Assembly: GCA_964057225.1 (NCBI GenBank)
Contig: OZ059900.1
Span: 22,940,001-23,004,000, forward strand
DNA length: 64,000 nucleotides
Source of the DNA: Auanema rhodensis
Lineage: Eukaryota > Animalia > Nematoda
Direction: 5' to 3'
The notes beneath the pieces are model-generated. The model was not told where the DNA came from and did no database searches. It was given only the letters and a program-made list of their open reading frames with translations. A program made the position numbers and the translations under genes. This document shows positions 36,361-59,200 of this stretch, one piece after another. Numbering within the stretch: position 1 is the first letter of the stretch; each line of letters begins with the position of its first letter.

Positions 36361-39300
36361 TTAGCATATTCTGAGGGCACGCCCCTTATGGCTAATATTG
36401 ATTAAATCGATTTTTGTTCATATGAGTCGTCAAATGCAACGAATTTCAGCGTGTTACATACTAAAATGAAGCATTTTACATGCTGAACACTAGAAAAATA
36501 CAAAAACACAGTATTTCCCATGAGAAATATTTTATTATGCTGGAAAACCAGTTTTAGCATATTCTGAGGGCACGCCCCTTATGGCTAATATTGATTAAAT
36601 CGATTTTTGTTCATATGAGTCGTCAAATGCAACGAATTTCAGCGTGTTACATACTAAAATGAAGCATTTTACATGCTGAACACTAGAAAAATACAAAAAC
36701 ACAGTATTTCCCATGAGAAATATTTTATTGAGCTGGAAAACCAGTTTTTGGAAATTTCGCTGTAAACAAGGTTTTGACTTACGATTTCATGTGTTCAAAC
36801 TCATGCAATGTCAATGAAACCTAGCTCAAAATTGTTCGTACAACGTCTAGTTCCACTTTCACGACAAAAAAACAGGGGTTAGAAAATTAAGGAAATTAGC
36901 ATATTCTGAGGGCACGCCCCTTATGGCTAATATTGATTAAATCGATTTTTGTTCATATGAGTCGTCAAATGCAACGAATTTCAGCGTGTTACATACTCAA
37001 ATGAAGCATTTTACATGCTGAAAACTAGAAAAATACAAAAACACAGTATTTCCCATGAGAAATATTTTATTATGCTGGAAAACCAGTTTTTGGAAATTTC
37101 GCTGTAAACAAGGTTTTGACTTACGATTTCATGTGTTCAAACTCATGCAATGTCAATGAAACCTAGCTCAAAATTGTTCGTACAACGTCTAGTTCCACTT
37201 TCACGACAAAAAAACAGGGGTTAGAAAATTAAGGAAATTAGCATATTCTGAGGGCACGCCCCTTATGGCTAATATTGATTAAATCGATTTTTGTTCATAT
37301 GAGTCGTCAAATGCAACGAATTTCAGCGTGTTACATACTAAAATGAAGCATTTTACATGCTGAACACTAGAAAAATACAAAAACACAGTATTTCCCATGA
37401 GAAATATTTTATTATGCTGGAAAACCAGTTTTTGGAAATTTCGCTGTAAACAAGGTTTTGACTTACGATTTCATGTGTTCAAACTCATGCAATGTCAATG
37501 AAACCTAGCTCAAAATTGTTCGTACAACGTCTAGTTCCACTTTCACGACAAAAAAACAGGGGTTAGAAAATTAAGGAAATTAGCATATTCTGAGGGCACG
37601 CCCCTTATGGCTAATATTGATTAAATCGATTTTTGTTCATATGAGTCGTCAAATGCAACGAATTTCAGCGTGTTACATACTAAAATGAAGCATTTTACAT
37701 GCTGAACACTAGAAAAATACAAAAACACAGTATTTCCCATGAGAAATATTTTATTGAGCTGGAAAACCAGTTTTTGGAAATTTCGCTGTAAACAAGGTTT
37801 TGACTTACGATTTCATGTGTTCAAACTCATGCAATGTCAATGAAACCTAGCTCAAAATTGTTCGTACAACGTCTAGTTCCACTTTCACGACAAAAAAACA
37901 GGGGTTAGAAAATTAAGGAAATTAGCATATTCTGAGGGCACGCCCCTTATGGCTAATATTGATTAAATCGATTTTTGTTCATATGAGTCGTCAAATGCAA
38001 CGAATTTCAGCGTGTTACATACTAAAATGAAGCATTTTACATGCTGAACACTAGAAAAATACAAAAACACAGTATTTCCCATGAGAAATATTTTATTATG
38101 CTGGAAAACCAGTTTTAGCATATTCTGAGGGCACGCCCCTTATGGCTAATATTGATTAAATCGATTTTTGTTCATATGAGTCGTCAAATGCAACGAATTT
38201 CAGCGTGTTACATACTAAAATGAAGCATTTTACATGCTGAACACTAGAAAAATACAAAAACACAGTATTTCCCATGAGAAATATTTTATTGAGCTGGAAA
38301 ACCAGTTTTTGGAAATTTCGCTGTAAACAAGGTTTTGACTTACGATTTCATGTGTTCAAACTCATGCAATGTCAATGAAACCTAGCTCAAAATTGTTCGT
38401 ACAACGTCTAGTTCCACTTTCACGACAAAAAAACAGGGGTTAGAAAATTAAGGAAATTAGCATATTCTGAGGGCACGCCCCTTATGGCTAATATTGATTA
38501 AATCGATTTTTGTTCATATGAGTCGTCAAATGCAACGAATTTCAGCGTGTTACATACTCAAATGAAGCATTTTACATGCTGAAAACTAGAAAAATACAAA
38601 AACACAGTATTTCCCATGAGAAATATTTTATTATGCTGGAAAACCAGTTTTTGGAAATTTCGCTGTAAACAAGGTTTTGACTTACGATTTCATGTGTTCA
38701 AACTCATGCAATGTCAATGAAACCTAGCTCAAAATTGTTCGTACAACGTCTAATTCCACTTTCACGACAAAAAAACAGGGGTTAGAAAATTAAGGAAATT
38801 AGCATATTCTGAGGGCACGCCCCTTATGGCTAATATTGATTAAATCGATTTTTGTTCATATGAGTCGTCAAATGCAACGAATTTCAGCGTGTTACATACT
38901 AAAATGAAGCATTTTACATGCTGAACACTAGAAAAATACAAAAACACAGTATTTCCCATGAGAAATATTTTATTGAGCTGGAAAACCAGTTTTTGGAAAT
39001 TTCGCTGTAAACAAGGTTTTGACTTACGATTTCATGTGTTCAAACTCATGCAATGTCAATGAAACCTAGCTCAAAATTGTTCGTACAACGTCTAGTTCCA
39101 CTTTCACGACAAAAAAACAGGGGTTAGAAAATTAAGGAAATTAGCATATTCTGAGGGCACGCCCCTTATGGCTAATATTGATTAAATCGATTTTTGTTCA
39201 TATGAGTCGTCAAATGCAACGAATTTCAGCGTGTTACATACTAAAATGAAGCATTTTACATGCTGAACACTAGAAAAATACAAAAACACAGTATTTCCCA

Positions 39301-39870
39301 TGAGAAATATTTTATTATGCTGGAAAACCAGTTTTAGCATATTCTGAGGGCACGCCCCTTATGGCTAATATTGATTAAATCGATTTTTGTTCATATGAGT
39401 CGTCAAATGCAACGAATTTCAGCGTGTTACATACTAAAATGAAGCATTTTACATGCTGAACACTAGAAAAATACAAAAACACAGTATTTCCCATGAGAAA
39501 TATTTTATTATGCTGGAAAACCAGTTTTTGGAAATTTCGCTGTAAACAAGGTTTTGACTTACGATTTCATGTGTTCAAACTCATGCAATGTCAATGAAAC
39601 CTAGCTCAAAATTGTTCGTACAACGTCTAGTTCCACTTTCACGACAAAAAAACAGGGGTTAGAAAATTAAGGAAATTAGCATATTCTGAGGGCACGCCCC
39701 TTATGGCTAATATTGATTAAATCGATTTTTGTTCATATGAGTCGTCAAATGCAACGAATTTCAGCGTGTTACATACTAAAATGAAGCATTTTACATGCTG
39801 AACACTAGAAAAATACAAAAACACAGTATTTCCCATGAGAAATATTTTATTATGCTGGAAAACCAGTTTT
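36361..39870 (+). repeat. Region with four 193-bp truncated satellite A monomers sharing one 149-bp deletion
   Basis: The novel junction CCAGTTTTAGCATATTC occurs at about 36555, 38116, 39335 and 39870. TTAGCATATT spacing from 36361 to 36554 is 193 bp. Confidence 0.95.
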
Positions 39871-41848
39871 AGCATATTCTGAGGGCACGCCCCTTATGGC
39901 TAATATTGATTAAATCGATTTTTGTTCATATGAGTCGTCAAATGCAACGAATTTCAGCGTGTTACATACTAAAATGAAGCATTTTACATGCTGAACACTA
40001 GAAAAATACAAAAACACAGTATTTCTCATGAGAAATATTTTATTATGCTGGAAAACCAGTTTTTGGAAATTTCGCTGTAAACAAGGTTTTGACTTACGAT
40101 TTCATGTGTTCAAACTCATGCAATGTCAATGAAACCTAGCTCAAAATTGTTTGTACAACGTCTAGTTCCACTTTCACGACAAAAAAACAGGGGTTAGAAA
40201 ATTAAGGAAATTAGCATATTCTGAGGGCACGCCCCTTATGGCTAATATTGATTAAATCGATTTTTGTTCATATGAGTAGTCAAATGCAACGAATTTCAGC
40301 GTGTTACATACTTAAATGAAGCATTTTACATGCTGAACACTAGAAAAATACAAAAACACAGTATTTCCCATGAGAAATATTTTATTATGCTGGAAACCAG
40401 TTTTTGGAATTTTCGCTGTAAACAAGGTTTTGACTTACGATTTCATGTGTTCAAACTCATGCAATGTCAATGAAACCTAGCTCAAAATTGTTCCTACAAC
40501 GTCTAATTCCACTTTCACGACAAAAAAACAGGGGTTAGAAAATTTAGGAAATTAGCATATTCTGAGGGCACGCCCCTTATGGCTAATATTGATTAAATCG
40601 ATTTTTGTTCATATAAGTCGTCAAATGCAACGAATTTCAGCGTGTTACATACTAAAATGAAGTATTTTACATGCTGAACACTAGAAAAATACAAAAACAC
40701 AGTATTTCCCATGAGAAATATTTTATTATGCTGGAAAACCAGTTTTTGGAAATTTCGCTGTAAACAAGGTTATGACTTACGATTTCATGTGTTCAAACTC
40801 ATGCAATGTCAATGAAACCTAGCTCAAAATTGTTCGTACAACGTCTAGTTCCACTTTCACGACAAAAAAACAGGGGTTAGAAAATTTAGGAAATTAGCAT
40901 ATTCTGAGGGCACGCCCCTTATGGCTAATATTGATTAAATCGATTTTTGTTCATATGAGTCGTCAAGTGCAACGAATTTCAGCGTGTTACATACTAAAAT
41001 GAAGTATTTTACATGCTGAACACTAGAAAAATACAAAAACACAGTATTTCCCATGAGAAATATTTTATTATGCTGGAAAACCAGTTTGAAAATTTCGCTG
41101 TAAACAAAGTTTTGACTTACGATTGCATGTGTTCAAACTCATGCAATGTCAATGAAACCTAGCTCAAAATTGTTCGTACAACGTCTAGTTCCACTTTCAC
41201 GACAAAAAAACAGGGGTTAGAAAATTAAGGAAATTAGCATATTCTGAGGGCACGCCCCTTATGGCTAATATTGATTAAATCGATTTTTGTTCATATGAGT
41301 CGTCAAATGCAACGAATTTCAGCGTGTTACATACTAAAATGAAGCATTTTACATGCTGAACACTAGAAAAATACAAAAACACAGTATTTCCCATGAGAAA
41401 TATTTTATTGAGCTGGAAAACCAGTTTTTGGAAATTTCGCTGTAAACAAGGTTTTGACTTACGATTTCATGTGTTCAAACTCATACAATGTCAATGAAAC
41501 CTAGCTCAAAATTGTTCGTACAACGTCTAGTTCCACTTTCACGACAAAAAAACAGGGGTTAGAAAATTAAGGAAATTAGCATATTCTGAGGGCACGCCCC
41601 TTATGGCTAATATTGATTAAATCGATTTTTGTTCATATGAGTCGTCAAATGCAACGAATTTCAGCGTGTTACATACTAAAATGAAGCATTTTACATGCTG
41701 AACACTAGAAAAATACAAAAACACAGTATTTCCCATGAGAAATATTTTATTATGCTGGAAAACCAGTTTTTGAAAATTTCGCTGTAAACAAAGTTTTGAC
41801 TTACGATTGCATGTGTTCAAACTCATGCATAGTCAATGAAACCTAGCT

Positions 41849-44800
41849 ACTGGAAACAGGCAGTACGCGATACGCAAATATTTGAATGACAGCTTTAATA
41901 CAATACGACTTAGCTTACTCAATCATATCAAGCTTCATGAACAGGGACTGCTTGAGTAATAGATGATAGCAATGATAGTTTCGTTTCTTTTTTTAATTAA
42001 CTTTCCAGTACGCGAGCTATAATATTTAGAACGCGATTCCTTGATAATGAAAAACTTTCAGAGCCTGCACTGATAATATAACTGGAAACAGGCAATACTA
42101 AAACATTTGAATGACAGCTTTATTACAATAGGACTTAGTTTACTCAATCATACCAATCTTCATGAACACGGACTGTTTGTGTAATAGATAATAGCAATAA
42201 TAGTTTCGTTTCTGTTTTTAATTAACTTTCCTGTACGCGAGTTATAATATTTAGAACGTGATTCCTTGATTATGAAAAATTTTTAGAGCCTGCACTGATA
42301 ATATAACTGGAAACAGGCAGTACGCGATACGCAAATATTTGAATGACAGCTTTAATACAAGACGACTTAGCTTACTCAATCATATCAAGCTTCATGAACA
42401 GGGACTGCTTGTGTAATAGATGATAGCAATGATAGTTTCGTTTCTTTTTTTAATTAACTTTCCAGTACGCGAGTTATCATATTTAGAACGCGATTGCTTC
42501 ATAATGAAAAATGTTTAGAGCCTGCACTGATATTATAATTGGAAACAGGCAGTACGCAATACGCAAACATTTGAATGGCAGCTTTAATACAAGACGACTT
42601 AGTTTACTCAATCATATCAAGCTTCATGAACACGGACTGTTTGTGCAATAGATGATAGCAATGATAGTTTCGTTTCTTTTTTTAACTAACTTTCCAGTAC
42701 GCGAGTTATAATATTTAGAACGCGATTCCTTGATAATGAAAAACTTTCAGAGCCTGCACTGATAATATAATTGGAAACAGGCAGTACGCAATACGCAAAC
42801 ATTTGAATGACAGCTTTATTATAATACGACTTAGTTTACTCAATTATATCAAGCTTCATGAACACGGACTGCTTGTGTAATATATAATAGCAATAATAGT
42901 TTCGTTTCTGTTTTTAATTAACTTTCCTGTACGCGAGTTATAATATTTAGAACGTGATTCCTTGATTATGAAAAACTTTCAGAGCCTGCACTGATAATAT
43001 AACTGGAAACAGGCAGTACGCGATACGCAAATATTTGAATGACAGCTTTAATACAAGACGACTTAGCTTACTCAATCATATCAAGCTTCATGAACAGGGA
43101 CTGCTTATGTAATAGATGATAGCAATGATAATTTCGTTTCTTTTTTCAATTAACTTTCCAGTACGCGAGTTATTATATTTAGAACGTGATTCCTTCATAA
43201 TGAAAACTTTTTAGAGCCTGCTCTGATAATATAACTGGAAACAGGCAATACTAAAACATTAGAATGACAGCTTTATTACAATAGGACTTAGTTTACTCAA
43301 TCATACCAATCTTCATGAACACGGACTGTTTGTGTAATAGATAATAGCAATAATAGTTTCGTTTCTGTTTTTAATTAACTTTCCTGTACGCGAGTTATAA
43401 TATTTAGAACGTGATTCCTTGATTATGAAAAACTTTCAGAGCCTGCACTGATAATATAATTGGAAACAGGCAGTACGCAATACGCAAACATTTGAATGAC
43501 AGCTTTATTACAATACGACTTAGTTTACTCAATTATATCAAGCTTCATGAACACGGACTGCTTGTGTAATATATAATAGCAATAATAGTTTTGTTTCTGT
43601 TTTTAATTAACTTTCCTGTACGCGAGTTATAATATTTAGAACGTGATTCCTTGATTATGAAAAACTTTCAGAGCCTGCACTGATAATATAATTGGAAACA
43701 GGCAGTACGCAATACGCAAACATTTGAATGACAGCTTTATTACAATACGACTTAGTTTACTCAATTATATCAAGCTTCATGAACACGGACTGCTTGTGTA
43801 ATATATAATAGCAATAATAGTTTCGTTTCTGTTTTTAATTAACTTTCCTGTACGCGAGTTATTATATTTAGAACGTGATTCCTTCATAATGAAAAATTTT
43901 TAGAGCCTGCACTGATAATATAACTGGAAACAGGCAATACTAAAACATTTGAATGACAGCTTTATTACAATAGGACTTAGTTTACTCAATCATATCAAGC
44001 TTCATGAACACGGACTGTTTGTGCAATAGATGATAGCAATGATTATTTCGTTTCTTTTTTCAATTAACTTTCCAGTACGCGAGTTATTATATTTAGAACG
44101 TGATTCCTTCATAATGAAAAATTTTTAGAGCCTGCACTGATAATATAACTGGCAACAGGCAATACGCAAACATTTGAATGACAGCTTTATTACAATACGA
44201 CTTAGTTTACTCAATCATATCAAGCTTCATGAACACGGACTGTTTGTGCAATAGATGATAGCAATGATAGTTTCGTTTCTTTTTTTAACTAACTTTCCAG
44301 TACGCGAGTTATAATATTTAGAACGCGATTCCTTGATAATGAAAAACTTTCAGAGCCTGCACTGATAATATAATTGGAAACAGGCAGTACGCAATACGCA
44401 AACATTTGAATGACAGCTTTATTACAATACGACTTAGTTTACTCAATCATATCAAGCTTCATGAACACGGACTGTTTGTGCAATATATAATAGCAATAAT
44501 AGTTTCGTTTCTGTTTTTAATTAACTTTCCTGTACGCGAGTTATAATATTTAGAACGTGATTCTTTGATTATGAAAAACTTTCAGATCCTGCACTGATAA
44601 TATAATTGGAAACAGGCAGTACGCAATACGCAAACATTTGAATGGCAGCTTTATTACAATACGACTTAGTTTACTCAATTATATCAAGCTTCATGAACAC
44701 GGACTGTTTGTGCAATAGATGATAGCAATGATAATTTCGTTTCTTTTTTCAATTAACTTTCCAGTACGCGAGTTATTATATTTAGAACGTGATTCCTTGA

Positions 44801-46833
44801 TTATGAAAAACTTTCAGAGCCTGCACTGATAATATAACTGGAAACAGGCAGTACGCAATAGGCAAACATTTGAATGACAGCTTTATTACAATACGACTTA
44901 GTTTACTCAATTATATCAAGCTTCATGAACACGGACTGCTTGTGTAATATATAATAGCAATAATAGTTTTGTTTCTGTTTTTAATTAACTTTCCTGTACT
45001 CGAGTTACAATATTTAGAACGTGATTCCTTCATAATGAAAAATTTTTAGAGCCTGCACTGATAATATAACTGGAAACAGGCAATACTAAAACATTTGAAT
45101 GACAGCTTTATTACAATAGGACTTAGTTTACTCAATCATATCAAGCTTCATGAACACGGACTGTTTGTGCAATAGATGATAGCAATGATTATTTCGTTTC
45201 TTTTTTCAATTAACTTTCCAGTACGCGAGTTATTATATTTAGAACGTGATTCCTTCATAATGAAAAATTTTTAGAGCCTGCACTGATAATATAATTGGAA
45301 ACAGGCAGTACGCAATACGCAAACATTTGAATGACAGCTTTATTACAATACGACTTAGCTTACTCAATCATATCAAGCTTCATGAACAGGGACTGTTTGT
45401 GTAATAGATGATAGCAATGATAGTTTCGTTTCTTTTTTTAATTAACTTTCCAGTACGCGAGTTATCATATTTAGAACGCGATTGCTTCATAATGAAAAAT
45501 GTTTAGAGCCTGCACTGATAATATAACTGGCAACAGGCAATACGCAAACATTTGAATGACAGCTTTATTACAATAGGACTTAGTTTACTCAATCATACCA
45601 ATCTTCATGAACACGGACTGTTTGTGTAATAGATAATAGCAATAATAGTTTCGTTTCTGTTTTTAATTAACTTTCCTGTACGCGAGTTATAATATTTAGA
45701 ACGTGATTCCTTGATTATGAAAAATTTTTAGAGCCTGCACTGATAATATAACTGGAAACAGGCAGTACGCGATACGCAAATATTTGAATGACAGCTTTAT
45801 TACAATACGACTTAGTTTACTCAATCATATCAAGAGTCATGAACACGGACTGTTTGTGTAATAGATAATAGCAATAATAGTTTCGTTTCTGTTTTCAAAT
45901 AACTTTCCAGTACGCGAGTTATTATATTTAGAACGTGATTCCTTCATAATGAAAAATTTTTAGAGCCTGCACTGATAATATAACTGGAAACAGGCAGTAC
46001 GCGATACGCAAACATTTGAATGACAGCTTTATTACAATACGACTTAGTTTACTCAATCATATCAAGCTTCATGAACACGGACTGTTTGTGTAATAGATAA
46101 TAGCAATAATAGTTTCGTTTCTGTTTTCAAATAACTTTCCAGTACGCGAGTTATTATATTTAGAACGTGATTCCTTCATAATGAAAAATTTTTAGAGCCT
46201 GCACTGATAATATAACTGGAAACAGGCAGTACGCGATACGCAAATATTTGAATGACAGCTTTAATACAATACGACTTAGCTTACTCAATCATATCAAGCT
46301 TCATGAACAGGGACTGCTTGTGTAATAGATGATAGCAATGATAGTTTCGTTTCTTTTTTTAATTAACTTTCCAGTACGCGAGTTATCATATTTAGAACGC
46401 GATTGCTTCATAATGAAAAATGTTTAGAGCCTGCACTGATAATATAACTGGCAACAGGCAATACGGAAACATTTGAATGACAGCTTTATTACAATACGAC
46501 TTAGTTTACTCAATCATATCAAGCTTCATGAACACGGACTGTTTGTGCAATAGATGATAGCAATGATAGTTTCGTTTCTTTTTTTAACTAACTTTCCAGT
46601 ACGCGAGTTATAATATTTAGAACGCGATTCCTTGATAATGAAAAACTTTCAGAGCCTGCACTGATAATATAACTGGAAACAGGCAATACTAAAACATTTG
46701 AATGACAGCTTTATTACAATAGGACTTAGTTTACTCAATCATACCAATCTTCATGAACACGGACTGTTTGTGTAATAGATGATAGCAATGATAATTTCGT
46801 TTCTTTTTTCAATTAACTTTCCAGTACGCGAGT
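41849..46833 (+). repeat. Satellite B, forward block: about 22 monomers of 225 or 232 bp
   Basis: Monomer heads A(C/T)TGG(A/C)AACAGGC at 41849, 42081, 42306, 42538 ... 46447, 46672, spaced 232 or 225 bp apart. The last monomer is cut after about 162 bp. About 35% GC. Confidence 0.98.
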
Positions 46834-47583
46834 TGTTCATGAAGATTGGTATGATTGAGTAAACTAAGTCCTATTGTAATAAAGCTGTCATTCAAATGTT
46901 TTAGTATTGCCTGTTTCCAGTTATATTATCAGTGCAGGCTCTGAAAGTTTTTCATTATCAAGGAATCGCGTTCTAAATATTATAACTCGCGTACTGGAAA
47001 GTTAGTTAAAAAAAGAAACGAAACTATCATTGCTATCATCTATTGCACAAACAGTCCGTGTTCATGAAGCTTGATATGATTGAGTAAACTAAGTCGTATT
47101 GTAATAAAGCTGTCATTCAAATGTTTCCGTATTGCCTGTTGCCAGTTATATTATCAGTGCAGGCTCTAAACATTTTTCATTATGAAGCAATCGCGTTCTA
47201 AATATGATAACTCGCGTACTGGAAAGTTAATTAAAAAAAGAAACGAAACTATCATTGCTATCATCTATTACACAAGCAGTCCCTGTTCATGAAGCTTGAT
47301 ATGATTGAGTAAGCTAAGTCGTATTGTATTAAAGCTGTCATTCAAATATTTGCGTATCGCGTACTGCCTGTTTCCAGTTATATTATCAGTGCAGGCTCTA
47401 AAAATTTTTCATTATGAAGGAATCACGTTCTAAATATAATAACTCGCGTACTGGAAAGTTATTTGAAAACAGAAACGAAACTATTATTGCTATTATCTAT
47501 TACACAAACAGTCCGTGTTCATGAAGCTTGATATGATTGAGTAAACTAAGTCGTATTGTAATAAAGCTGTCATTCAAATGTTT
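46010..47583. repeat. Long inverted repeat: 750-bp arms (46010-46759 and 46834-47583) with a 74-bp spacer
   Basis: Monomer-diagnostic variants mirror across the centre (paired coordinates sum to 93593): CCAATCTTC/GAAGATTGG, ATACGGAAAC/GTTTCCGTAT, CAGGGACTGC/GCAGTCCCTG and TTCAAATAAC/GTTATTTGAA. The first mismatch I found is at 46009/47584. Confidence 0.92.
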
Positions 47584-53289: not shown

Positions 53290-56200
53290 TTTGCCTATTG
53301 CGTACTGCCTGTTTCCAATTATATTATCAGTGCAGGCTCTGAAAGTTTTTCATAATCAAGGAATCACGTTCTAAATATTATAACTCGCGTACAGGAAAGT
53401 TAATTAAAAACAGAAACGAAACTATTATTGCTATTATCTATTACACAAACAGTCCGCGTTCATGAAGATTGGTATGATTGAGTAAACTAAGTCCTATTGT
53501 AATAAAGCTGTCATTCAAATGTTTTAGTATTGCCTGTTTCCAGTTATATTATCAGTGCAGGCTCTAAAAAGTTTTCATTATGAAGGAATCACGTTCTAAA
53601 TATAATAACTCGCGTACTGGAAAGTTAATTGAAAAAAGAAACGAAATTATCATTGCTATCATCTATTGCACAAACAGTCCGTGTTCATGAAGCTTGATAT
53701 AATTGAGTAAACTAAGTCGTATTGTAATAAAGCTGCCATTCAAATGTTTGCGTATTGCGTACTGCCTGTTTCCAATTATATTATCAGTGCAGGCTCTGAA
53801 AGTTTTTTATAATCAAAGAATCACGTTCTAAATATTATAACTCGCGTACAGGAAAGTTAATTAAAAACAGAAACGAAACTATTATTGCTATTATATATTA
53901 CACAAGCAGTCCGTGTTCATGAAGCTTGATATAATTGAGTAAACTAAGTCGTATTATAATAAAACTGTCATTCAAATGTTTTCGTATTGCGTACTGCCTG
54001 TTTCCAATTATATTATCAGTGCAGGCTCTGAAAGTTTTTCATTATCAAGGAATCGCGTTCTAAATATTATAACTCGCGTACTGGAAAGTTAGTTAGAAAA
54101 AGAAACGAAACTATCATTGCTATCATCTATTGCACAAACAGTCCGTGTTCATGAAGCTTGATATGATTGAGTAAACTAAGTCGTATTGTAATAAAGCTGT
54201 CATTCAAATGTTTGCGTATTTCCTGTTGCCAGTTATATTATCAGTGCAGGCTCTAAAAATTTTTCATTATCAAGGAATCGCGTTCTAAATATTATAACTC
54301 GCGTACTGGAAAGTTAGTTAAAAAAAGAAACGAAACTATCATTGCTATCATCTATTGCACAAACAGTCCGTGTTCATGAAGCTTGATATGATTGAGTAAA
54401 CTAAGTCGTATTGTAATAAAGCTGTCATTCAAATGTTTGCGTATTGCCTGTTGCCAGTTATATTATCAGTGCAGGCTCTAAAAATTTTTCATTATCAAGG
54501 AATCGCGTTCTAAATATTATAACTCGCGTACTGGAAAGTTAGTTAAAAAAAGAAACGAAACTATCATTGCTATCATCTATTGCACAAACAGTCCGTGTTC
54601 ATGAAGCTTGATATGATTGAGTAAACTAAGTCGTATTGTAATAAAGCTGTCATTCAAATGTTTGCGTATTGCCTGTTGCCAGTTATATTATCAGTGCAGG
54701 CTCTGAAAGTTTTTTATAATCAAAGAATCACGTTCTAAATATTATAACTCGCGTACAGGAAAGTTAATTAAAAACAGAAACGAAACTATTATTGCTATTA
54801 TATATTACACAAGCAGTCCGTGTTCATGAAGATTGGTATGATTGAGTAAACTAAGTCCTATTGTAATAAAGCTGTCATTCAAATGTTTTAGTATTGCCTG
54901 TTTCCAGTTATATTATCAGTGCAGGCTCTGAAAGTTTTTCATTATCAAGGAATCGCGTTCTAAATATTATAACTCGCGTACTGGAAAGTTAGTTAAAAAA
55001 AGAAACGAAACTATCATTGCTATCATCTATTGCACAAACAGTCCGTGTTCATGAAGCTTGATATGATTGAGTAAACTAAGTCGTATTGTAATAAAGCTGT
55101 CATTCAAATGTTTCCGTATTGCCTGTTGCCAGTTATATTATCAGTGCAGGCTCTAAACATTTTTCATTATGAAGCAATCGCGTTCTAAATATGATAACTC
55201 GCGTACTGGAAAGTTAATTAAAAAAAGAAACGAAACTATCATTGCTATCATCTATTACACAAGCAGTCCCTGTTCATGAAGCTTGATATGATTGAGTAAG
55301 CTAAGTCGTATTGTATTAAAGCTGTCATTCAAATATTTGCGTATCGCGTACTGCCTGTTTCCAGTTATATTATCAGTGCAGGCTCTAAAAATTTTTCATT
55401 ATGAAGGAATCACGTTCTAAATATAATAACTCGCGTACTGGAAAGTTATTTGAAAACAGAAACGAAACTATTATTGCTATTATATATTACACAAGCAGTC
55501 CGTGTTCATGAAGCTTGATATAATTGAGTAAACTAAGTCGTATTATAATAAAGCTGTCATTCAAATGTTTGCGTATTGCGTACTGCCTGTTTCCAATTAT
55601 ATTATCAGTGCAGGCTCTGAAAGTTTTTCATTATCAAGGAATCGCGTTCTAAATATTATAACTCGCGTACTGGAAAGTTAGTTAAAAAAAGAAACGAAAC
55701 TATCATTGCTATCATCTATTGCACAAACAGTCCGTGTTCATGAAGCTTGATATGATTGAGTAAACTAAGTCGTATTGTAATAAAGCTGTCATTCAAATGT
55801 TTGCGTATTTCCTGTTGCCAGTTATATTATCAGTGCAGGCTCTAAAAATTTTTCATTATCAAGGAATCGCGTTCTAAATATTATAACTCGCGTACTGGAA
55901 AGTTAGTTAAAAAAAGAAACGAAACTATCATTGCTATCATCTATTGCACAAACAGTCCGTGTTCATGAAGCTTGATATGATTGAGTAAACTAAGTCGTAT
56001 TGTAATAAAGCTGTCATTCAAATGTTTGCGTATTGCCTGTTGCCAGTTATATTATCAGTGCAGGCTCTAAAAATTTTTCATTATCAAGGAATCGCGTTCT
56101 AAATATTATAACTCGCGTACTGGAAAGTTAGTTAAAAAAAGAAACGAAACTATCATTGCTATCATCTATTGCACAAACAGTCCGTGTTCATGAAGCTTGA

Positions 56201-59200
56201 TATGATTGAGTAAACTAAGTCGTATTGTAATAAAGCTGTCATTCAAATGTTTGCGTATTGCCTGTTGCCAGTTATATTATCAGTGCAGGCTCTGAAAGTT
56301 TTTTATAATCAAAGAATCACGTTCTAAATATTATAACTCGCGTACAGGAAAGTTAATTAAAAACAGAAACGAAACTATTATTGCTATTATATATTACACA
56401 AGCAGTCCGTGTTCATGAAGATTGGTATGATTGAGTAAACTAAGTCCTATTGTAATAAAGCTGTCATTCAAATGTTTTAGTATTGCCTGTTTCCAGTTAT
56501 ATTATCAGTGCAGGCTCTGAAAGTTTTTCATTATCAAGGAATCGCGTTCTAAATATTATAACTCGCGTACTGGAAAGTTAGTTAAAAAAAGAAACGAAAC
56601 TATCATTGCTATCATCTATTGCACAAACAGTCCGTGTTCATGAAGCTTGATATGATTGAGTAAACTAAGTCGTATTGTAATAAAGCTGTCATTCAAATGT
56701 TTCCGTATTGCCTGTTGCCAGTTATATTATCAGTGCAGGCTCTAAACATTTTTCATTATGAAGCAATCGCGTTCTAAATATGATAACTCGCGTACTGGAA
56801 AGTTAATTAAAAAAAGAAACGAAACTATCATTGCTATCATCTATTACACAAGCAGTCCCTGTTCATGAAGCTTGATATGATTGAGTAAGCTAAGTCGTAT
56901 TGTATTAAAGCTGTCATTCAAATATTTGCGTATCGCGTACTGCCTGTTTCCAGTTATATTATCAGTGCAGGCTCTAAAAATTTTTCATTATGAAGGAATC
57001 ACGTTCTAAATATAATAACTCGCGTACTGGAAAGTTATTTGAAAACAGAAACGAAACTATTATTGCTATTATCTATTACACAAACAGTCCGTGTTCATGA
57101 AGCTTGATATGATTGAGTAAACTAAGTCGTATTGTAATAAAGCTGTCATTCAAATGTTTCCGTATTGCCTGTTGCCAGTTATATTATCAGTGCAGGCTCT
57201 AAACATTTTTCATTATGAAGCAATCGCGTTCTAAATATGATAACTCGCGTACTGGAAAGTTAATTAAAAAAAGAAACGAAATTATCATTGCTATCATCTA
57301 TTGCACAAACAGTCCGTGTTGATGAAGCTTGATATAATTGAGTAAACTAAGTCGTATTGTAATAAAGCTGTCATTCAAATGTTTGCGTATTGCCTGTTGC
57401 CAGTTATATTATCAGTGCAGGCTCTGAAAGTTTTTTATAATCAAAGAATCACGTTCTAAATATTATAACTCGCGTACAGGAAAGTTAATTAAAAACAGAA
57501 ACGAAACTATTATTGCTATTATATATTACACAAGCAGTCCGTGTTCATGAAGATTGGTATGATTGAGTAAACTAAGTCCTATTGTAATAAAGCTGTCATT
57601 CAAATGTTTTAGTATTGCCTGTTTCCAGTTATATTATCAGTGCAGGCTCTGAAAGTTTTTCATTATCAAGGAATCGCGTTCTAAATATTATAACTCGCGT
57701 ACTGGAAAGTTAGTTAAAAAAAGAAACGAAACTATCATTGCTATCATCTATTGCACAAACAGTCCGTGTTCATGAAGCTTGATATGATTGAGTAAACTAA
57801 GTCGTATTGTAATAAAGCTGTCATTCAAATGTTTCCGTATTGCCTGTTGCCAGTTATATTATCAGTGCAGGCTCTAAACATTTTTCATTATGAAGCAATC
57901 GCGTTCTAAATATGATAACTCGCGTACTGGAAAGTTAATTAAAAAAAGAAACGAAACTATCATTGCTATCATCTATTACACAAGCAGTCCCTGTTCATGA
58001 AGCTTGATATGATTGAGTAAGCTAAGTCGTATTGTATTAAAGCTGTCATTCAAATATTTGCGTATCGCGTACTGCCTGTTTCCAGTTATATTATCAGTGC
58101 AGGCTCTAAAAATTTTTCATTATGAAGGAATCACGTTCTAAATATAATAACTCGCGTACTGGAAAGTTATTTGAAAACAGAAACGAAACTATTATTGCTA
58201 TTATCTATTACACAAACAGTCCGTGTTCATGAAGCTTGATATGATTGAGTAAACTAAGTCGTATTGTAATAAAGCTGTCATTCAAATGTTTCCGTATTGC
58301 CTGTTGCCAGTTATATTATCAGTGCAGGCTCTAAACATTTTTCATTATGAAGCAATCGCGTTCTAAATATGATAACTCGCGTACTGGAAAGTTAATTAAA
58401 AAAAGAAACGAAATTATCATTGCTATCATCTATTGCACAAACAGTCCGTGTTGATGAAGCTTGATATAATTGAGTAAACTAAGTCGTATTGTAATAAAGC
58501 TGTCATTCAAATGTTTGCGTATCGCGTACTGCCTGTTTCCAGTTATATTATCAGTGCAGGCTCTAAAAATTTTTCATTATGAAGGAATCACGTTCTAAAT
58601 ATAATAACTCGCGTACTGGAAAGTTATTTGAAAACAGAAACGAAACTATTATTGCTATTATCTATTACACAAACAGTCCGTGTTCATGACTCTTGATATG
58701 ATTGAGTAAACTAAGTCGTATTGTAATAAAGCTGTCATTCAAATATTTGCGTATCGCGTACTGCCTGTTTCCAGTTATATTATCAGTGCAGGCTCTAAAA
58801 ATTTTTCATAATCAAGGAATCACGTTCTAAATATTATAACTCGCGTACAGGAAAGTTAATTAAAAACAGAAACGAAACTATTATTGCTATTATCTATTAC
58901 ACAAACAGTCCGTGTTCATGAAGATTGGTATGATTGAGTAAACTAAGTCCTATTGTAATAAAGCTGTCATTCAAATGTTTGCGTATTGCCTGTTGCCAGT
59001 TATATTATCAGTGCAGGCTCTAAACATTTTTCATTATGAAGCAATCGCGTTCTAAATATGATAACTCGCGTACTGGAAAGTTAATTAAAAAAAGAAACGA
59101 AACTATCATTGCTATCATCTATTACACAAACAGTCCCTGTTCATGAAGCTTGATATGATTGAGTAAGCTAAGTCGTATTGTAATAAAGCTGTCATTCAAA

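Follow-up and report, generated by a model that had tools for sequence, protein, structure and literature searches.

A 64,000-nt stretch of the genome of the nematode Auanema rhodensis (assembly GCA_964057225.1, contig OZ059900.1, positions 22,940,001 to 23,004,000; hereafter the window) consists of tandem repeats only, as found with Tandem Repeats Finder (TRF), composition and anchor scans. One of its families, here called satellite B, reverses its orientation within the window, and the question raised by the locus is how a satellite array comes to face its own mirror image. A reading made from the sequence alone (the sequence-only reading) had proposed a fold-back inside the array, on the ground that the monomers on either side of the switch form a perfect inverted repeat that is in phase with a higher-order repeat (HOR). 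The junction was dissected at the level of single monomers. Both arms were found to begin at the same coordinate of the HOR, and with middling confidence the junction is attributed to the repair of a break at a single site, in an event of the fold-back or sister-fusion class that may have included a short templated patch at its centre.

The strand switch of satellite B

Satellite B was found in + orientation from 41849 to 46833, the spacer included, and in − orientation from 46834 to the end of the window. The switch between 46833 and 46834 was placed by TRF at 46834, in agreement with the sequence-only reading, and is the only one in the window. An ungapped reverse-complement walk from the centre likewise confirmed the proposed palindrome: 46010-46759 and 46834-47583 are exact reverse complements over 750 nt with 0 mismatches, on either side of a 74-nt spacer. 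An inverted copy adjoins a non-inverted copy across a short spacer, which is the arrangement of a fold-back inverted duplication. The 17-mer across the junction, GCGAGTTGTTCATGAAG, has a single occurrence in the window. Microhomology at the join amounts to 1 nt (the T at 46834 is assignable to both sides), and inverted microhomology of at least 2 nt, a mark of fold-back junctions, is absent from the spacer/inversion boundary. The canonical continuation of the spacer monomer was compared with the start of the right arm and no similarity was found. A short pre-existing inverted repeat was considered as a fold-back primer and rejected, none being present at the join.

Satellite B was split at a conserved anchor into 96 monomers, all of which (96/96) are 225 or 232 bp in length. 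The right array has a period of 3649 bp, equal to 9 x 225 bp plus 7 x 232 bp, or 16 monomers. Pairwise differences between the 16 monomer types number 1-32 bases, the single-base difference being that between positions 1 and 2 and all others at least 4; monomers of the same position 3649 bp apart, in different HOR copies, differ by 0-3 bases. Satellite B is a HOR satellite, its monomers being divergent and its 16-monomer blocks near-identical. Monomers were numbered outward from the junction, L01 onward in the left array and R01 onward in the right. Monomer typing assigned both L01/L02/L03 and R01/R02/R03 to HOR positions 4/5/6, and both arms begin in position 4 at the same monomer base; the 16-monomer HOR and the shared phase of the two sides had been described correctly. 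The join between 46833 and 46834 is the only out-of-register junction within satellite B among the 96 monomers. Because every monomer is 225 or 232 bp long, all rearrangements inside satellite B except the strand switch are in monomer register.

The HOR order of the left array breaks exactly at the boundary between arm and spacer. Over its 74 nt the spacer has 8 mismatches to canonical position 3, the expected neighbour, 1 to position 14 and 2 to each of positions 7 and 11. The 60 nt from 46775 to 46834, comprising the last 59 nt of the spacer and base 46834, match position-14 monomers without a difference. The window contains no exact donor of all 74 nt; its best match has 1 mismatch. As a progenitor continuation of the left arm the spacer is in register, and it fits only a progenitor array with an earlier irregularity at this place. 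The canonical HOR runs to the end of monomer 4 in both arms, with up to 7 further, ambiguous bases on the left.

The 7/8 hybrid monomer L04 limits the perfect mirror to 750 nt. Its 68 nt nearest the junction are of position-7 type and identical to R04. The remainder is of position-8 type and matches the R52/R68 variant exactly, with position-6 type fitting that stretch equally. L04 carries the signature of an in-register unequal exchange that deleted one monomer. At position 8 the left arm has the regular type and the right arm an 8/9 mosaic, and mirroring in detail is confined to positions 4-7. A further long inverted match, the next best, extends over 1624 nt at 97% with an offset of 914 bp, which is produced by the L04 deletion and a 689-bp duplication in the right arm together.

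The inner 200-nt arms were predicted to fold into a single hairpin of −241 kcal/mol (z = −44 versus shuffles), an energy that is a trivial consequence of a perfect inverted repeat. With long perfect arms, a short spacer and intrastrand pairing strongly favoured, the palindrome is predicted to be capable of forming a hairpin or cruciform, and a role in cruciform formation or fragility would be reasonable. According to passages of PMC10164571, spacer length and divergence lower the instability of inverted repeats in double-stranded DNA and have little effect in long single-stranded DNA; on that basis the 74-nt spacer is expected to lower cruciform extrusion.

A natural 8-bp palindrome, TTCATGAA, is present in each satellite B monomer, including 46750-46757 and 46836-46843. 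It lies inside the arms, 2 nt from the monomer point at which both arms end, and not at the join. TTCATGAA was not the switch site, because a switch within it would give a palindrome with no spacer, unlike the one observed.

Arm identity and HOR phase as evidence

The identity of the arms was compared with that of other HOR copies, a check proposed with the sequence-only reading. The left 750-mer has four perfect reverse-complement copies, at 46834, 56410, 57542 and 61191; the arms had no greater identity to each other than to the last three of these, which lie 10-15 kb away. At its inner end, the match of the left arm to each of the three is 7 nt longer than that to the adjacent arm. The right arm in turn has direct copies at 57542 and 61191 that agree with it exactly over its first 1036 nt, a longer match than that to the left arm. 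Over ~1.8 kb, the proximal HOR copy of the left array has 5, 6, 5 and 8 differences to four HOR copies of the right array, the nearest included. Arm identity as a sign of recent copying was rejected on these grounds, the left arm having four perfect reverse-complement copies and equal distances to all HOR copies. By this comparison the arms would not rank as each other's closest relatives, in an array too homogeneous for the test to exclude a recent copy. A recent fold-back of a whole arm is not what the junction shows.

A null simulation was run in which random pieces of the satellite B array were joined head-to-head with independent breakpoints (372 junctions). In 93% of joins the simulation produced a nearby perfect inverted repeat at least 300 nt long, the median arm measuring 970 nt. 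Arms as perfect as the observed 750 bases would be shown by any head-to-head join of the satellite B array; in a homogenised array, perfect arm identity is meaningless. Two head-to-head HOR arrays always have a mirror register, and only the offset of the spacer varies.

The only unusual feature relative to the null simulation was the short spacer. Simulated spacers had a median of 1115 nt and were 74 nt or shorter in 3.8% of joins (P = 0.038), close to the chance of about 1 in 16 previously put forward for an in-phase join. In canonical HOR sequence the ends of the two arms lie 0-7 bp apart, for which the chance is ~15/3649 = 0.4% (P ~0.004), a post hoc figure that assumes the left array to be canonical at the end of the arm. 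The two breakpoints are closer in progenitor coordinates than expected by chance, in a single case assessed post hoc. Because of this coincidence of phase, a same-site origin, whether by fold-back, template switch or sister fusion, is preferred to one from unrelated breakpoints; because only one strand switch is present, there is no multiple-testing pool within the window. The fold-back proposal stands in part: its phase argument favours a same-site origin, its identity argument fails, and the spacer requires the model to be modified. HOR phase can be used as a coordinate system inside a repeat, by which a same-site event is separated from unrelated breakpoints.

The surrounding arrays

Coordinates of the junction and of the arrays around it are collected in Table 1. 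Outward from the junction, the monomer types of the left array are 4, 5, 6, 7/8 hybrid, 9, 10, 11, 12, 13/14 hybrid, 15, 16, 2/11 hybrid, 12, 13, 13, 14 and onward, and those of the right array are 4, 5, 6, 7, 8/9 mosaic, 9, 10, 11/9 mosaic, 9, 10, 11 and onward to 16, followed by 1, 2, 3, 4 and onward. HOR positions in the left array ascend away from the junction, and several of its monomers are in-register hybrids. L01-L07, the junction-proximal 1.6 kb, have no private difference from the right HOR, and L08-L21 have ~1 each. The distal left array (41849-45156, L08-L21) consists mostly of monomers that are in-register mosaics of two canonical HOR types, each with only 0-4 private changes. Far from the junction, L18 (0 differences) and L15 (1 difference) are still near-canonical. 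The apparent divergence of the left array near the satellite A boundary is mostly rearrangement and not mutation.

Table 1. Coordinates of the junction elements, hybrid monomers and satellite arrays in the window
Feature	Start	End	Strand	Description	Basis
Left palindrome arm	46010	46759	+	L01 (position 4), L02 (5), L03 (6) and junction-proximal 68 nt of L04	
Spacer	46760	46833	+	74 nt, non-mirrored; monomer columns 0-73, register of left array	
Non-homologous head-to-head join	46833	46834	.	1 nt possible microhomology	
Right palindrome arm	46834	47583	−	R01 (position 4), R02 (5), R03 (6) and first 68 nt of R04 (canonical position 7)	
L04 hybrid monomer	45846	46077	+	Junction-proximal part position-7 type, distal part position-8 (or 6) type	
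R05-R08	47741	48661	−	Mosaics R05 (8/9 type) and R08 (11/9 type) flanking 689-bp three-monomer duplication	
Left satellite B array	41849	46759	+	L21 to L01 and 95-nt partial monomer	
Right satellite B array	46834	64000	−	At least 75 monomers, 16-monomer 3649-bp HOR; runs off window	
Satellite A array	1	41848	+	342-bp unit, ~122 copies; left flank of satellite B	TRF, anchor scan

Two variants were found further out in the right array. At 55271-55734 the step from R38 to R39 skips from position 6 to 16, with nine monomers missing, and at 57092-57541 R46, R47 and R48 are of types 7, 8/3 mosaic and 4, with positions 4-7 repeated. Both variants are in register and are typical products of unequal exchange.

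Satellite A, to the left of satellite B, is a regular 342-bp ladder with a few units of 341, 343 or 335 bp. The exceptions, between 36361 and 40063, are four near-identical 193-bp internal partial duplications (36361-36748, 37922-38309, 39141-39528 and 39676-40063), all within ~5.5 kb of the satellite B boundary. No minus-strand copy of satellite A was found anywhere in the window by anchor scan. The boundary between 41848 and 41849 is sharp, with AACCTAGCT directly followed by ACTGGAAACAGG, and both repeat units are cut mid-monomer. It contains no transposon, filler or evident microhomology, and is the second non-homologous junction in the window.

An Rfam scan of the window returned no RNA family. 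Relatives of satellite B were not found in viral or prokaryotic-genome collections. In a metagenome collection, a conserved 20-mer of satellite B gave a single match, contig UBJH01003424.1, which shares just 25 bases with the window and was rejected as a relative, the match being a chance 25-mer. The family was not identified in the literature by k-mer or by monomer length.

Origin of the junction and its relation to known systems

The sequence of events given here, with its break and its copying or fusion, is a reconstruction from the observed anatomy, phase, hybrid monomers and spacer type. A break would have occurred at or just past the end of HOR monomer 4, after which the array would have been fused with its mirror image or extended by copying from it, with the result that both arms begin at the same HOR coordinate. 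Two variants were considered. In variant (a), the 74-nt centre would be a classical fold-back loop, with priming 74 nt behind the break. This would need a progenitor array in which monomer 4 had an irregular neighbour exactly at the priming site, a coincidence estimated at ~1% from the density of in-register exchange points. In variant (b), the broken end would have been extended by ~67-74 nt, in register, on a different, position-14-like monomer, and the extended end would then, by end-joining with 1 nt of microhomology, have been fused to the mirror end, on either the sister chromatid or the folded-back strand. Variant (b) is considered somewhat more likely than variant (a): a patch that is in register but out of phase, coinciding arm ends and 1-nt microhomology need no extra coincidences under it.

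The register of the spacer, which is that of the left arm, its different monomer type and its 60-nt identity to position 14 fit a homology-primed patch. One non-homologous event, in arrays whose other changes all came from homologous exchange, is expected to leave a sole out-of-register junction, as found among the 96 monomers. Later in-register unequal exchanges would have changed both arms, giving the 7/8 hybrid on the left and the 689-bp duplication on the right, and the right array would have been lengthened by HOR amplification. Neither variant alone accounts for a short (5 kb), changed left array beside a right array of at least 17 kb; either amplification of the right HOR or a pre-existing + left array is needed.

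Inversion of the 5-kb left block (41849-46833) by a simple pair of breaks was rejected, as re-inversion does not restore a continuous array: re-inverting the block places CCTGTTTCCAGT directly before TGTTCATG, whereas the canonical array runs from CCAGT into TATATTATC.

Several observations weigh against a same-site repair event. The spacer is not canonical position 3, and a plain loop model has to assume the earlier irregularity at the very site of priming. Variants private to both arms were sought and none was found, and the arms are not shown to be closer kin than other HOR copies; the sole hint of kinship is that the left position-16 monomers (L11, L18) carry the R16/R39 variant, a 50% coincidence. 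Symmetry is over after 3.3 monomers, with position 8 differing between the arms. The arrays are very unequal, the left ending at satellite A after 5 kb and the right continuing as regular HOR for at least 17 kb. The private changes of the distal left monomers, ~1 each, are absent on the right and require extra turnover. Microhomology is 1 nt, compared with 2-8 nt in sequenced human fold-back junctions, and the spacer is 74 nt, compared with at least 766 bp in the human fold-back series (PMC3907307). The statistics are post hoc and concern a single junction in a single window.

The spacer and the gradient of private differences could also be explained by an older strand switch that was originally out of phase, a position-14-type fragment facing the inverted array, with the in-phase palindrome being secondary. 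A break in the left array would later have been repaired from the inverted right array by gene conversion, synthesis-dependent strand annealing or break-induced replication; monomers ~12 to 4 would have been copied up to the end of the right array and a 74-nt stub left unconverted. Such a history accounts for the position-14-like, in-register spacer, for the contrast between L01-L07 (1.6 kb without private differences) and L08-L21, and for an independent + array adjoining satellite A. Arm-to-arm conversion is established for large palindromes, for example on the human Y chromosome, and provides a precedent. The copying would, however, need to end precisely where the template arm ends and be followed by a join to the stub without homology, when a stop at least one monomer sooner would have been equally easy and would have left the arms out of phase. 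The identity gradient could equally be an ordinary array-edge effect, and the near-canonical L18 and L15 are distant from the junction. An older switch with later conversion is considered unlikely. Chance is a further explanation: the junction of an ordinary inversion or insertion, its breakpoints unrelated, would happen to lie no more than a third of a monomer from the shared HOR phase. The homogeneity of the HOR would then be enough to make the arms perfect, as in the simulated joins, and the arms are indeed no closer to each other than to distant copies. Judged by its own monomer type (14-, 7- or 11-like), the spacer does not share the phase of position 4, and in some human satellites strand switches are frequent and seemingly placed at random, according to parts of the surveys cited below. 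The two chance estimates given above (P ~0.038 for a spacer of 74 nt or less and ~0.004 for canonical ends within 7 bp) count against unrelated breakpoints, as does the presence of only one switch in the window, and such a junction is judged rather improbable.

An origin in the data was weighed on the same terms. A chimeric inverted read, produced by polymerase strand switching, a missing adapter or a ligation chimera, could have been placed by the assembler among HOR copies that are 100% identical. No regions are more prone to misassembly than satellite arrays; the k-mer across the junction occurs only once in the window, and HOR copies are identical over 750-1036 nt, which would let an assembly graph exit a chimeric read within less than 1 kb. 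A fold-back read would nevertheless be mirrored over its whole length, and here R04 (position 7) and L04 (7/8 hybrid) diverge after 750 nt, and no mirrored satellite A in − orientation is present within 17 kb. A strand-switch artefact fails to account for a 74-nt in-register patch of another monomer type, and ligation chimeras would be in phase only ~4% of the time. A plain fold-back read artefact is unlikely, and an assembly or read artefact of any of these kinds is given a low probability. Same-site break repair, preferred over these explanations, might be extended to a general rule, namely that in-phase, short-spacer fold-back or fusion is a regular route to strand switches in the satellite B family and perhaps in HOR satellites generally; this extension is very doubtful on present evidence. 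If it were true, each switch would record a break healed on its own mirror image that later seeded a new mirror-image HOR array, and the centre of the junction would persist in the array as a hairpin-prone fragile site or structural landmark.

Strand switches in satellites are common and fold-back inverted duplications are a well-known class, of which this junction is a well-resolved example. Documented fold-back junctions have spacers and 2-8 nt of microhomology or insertions, and the spacers of human inverted duplications with terminal deletion measure 766-70,466 bp (PMC3907307). In such duplications a break is followed by intrastrand pairing and a dicentric, and some of the junctions in PMC3907307 have insertions instead of microhomology; foldback inversions are also known from yeast and cancer (PMC10622511). 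The present junction differs in that its spacer is not the expected progenitor sequence, and in that the event took place inside a tandem HOR array, so that arm identity carries no information. U-type fusion and end-joining with templated insertions (PMC3834830 and passages of PMC11724301) offer a second comparison. Both arms end 0-7 bp apart in the canonical HOR, as two fused sister ends would, and a short templated patch appears to be present at the join. The U-type sister-chromatid exchange model has no spacer at all, unlike the 74-nt centre found here (PMC3907307), and the short templated and inverted insertions at yeast breaks are mostly ~5-34 bp in the passages of PMC11724301 concerned, compared with a patch of 67-74 nt.

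The combination of near-perfect arms with a short asymmetric centre is shared with large genomic palindromes. The arms of these are kept alike by arm-to-arm conversion, as on the human Y chromosome, and the ribosomal DNA palindrome of Tetrahymena has a short non-palindromic centre. Conversion between inverted arms could account for the homogeneous inner 1.6 kb of the left array. The arms described here differ from those palindromes in being tandem repeats, with an identity common to many copies and a symmetry of only 3.3 monomers.

Satellite strand switches are common in complete assemblies and their breakpoints are rarely dissected. If confirmed by reads and found to recur at other switches, the arrangement described here would identify breaking and self-copying as a source of satellite inversions and mirror-symmetric arrays. 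In human HSat3, beta satellite and alpha-satellite HOR arrays, switches have been counted and a random placement along the arrays has been reported in parts of two surveys (10.1101/2021.07.12.452052; 10.64898/2026.07.22.740206). The satellite B junction resembles these in its abrupt change of orientation within one family, its position beside another satellite and the homogeneity of its arrays. The passages concerned give the switches without breakpoint-level analysis of phase or spacer, both of which are supplied by this junction.

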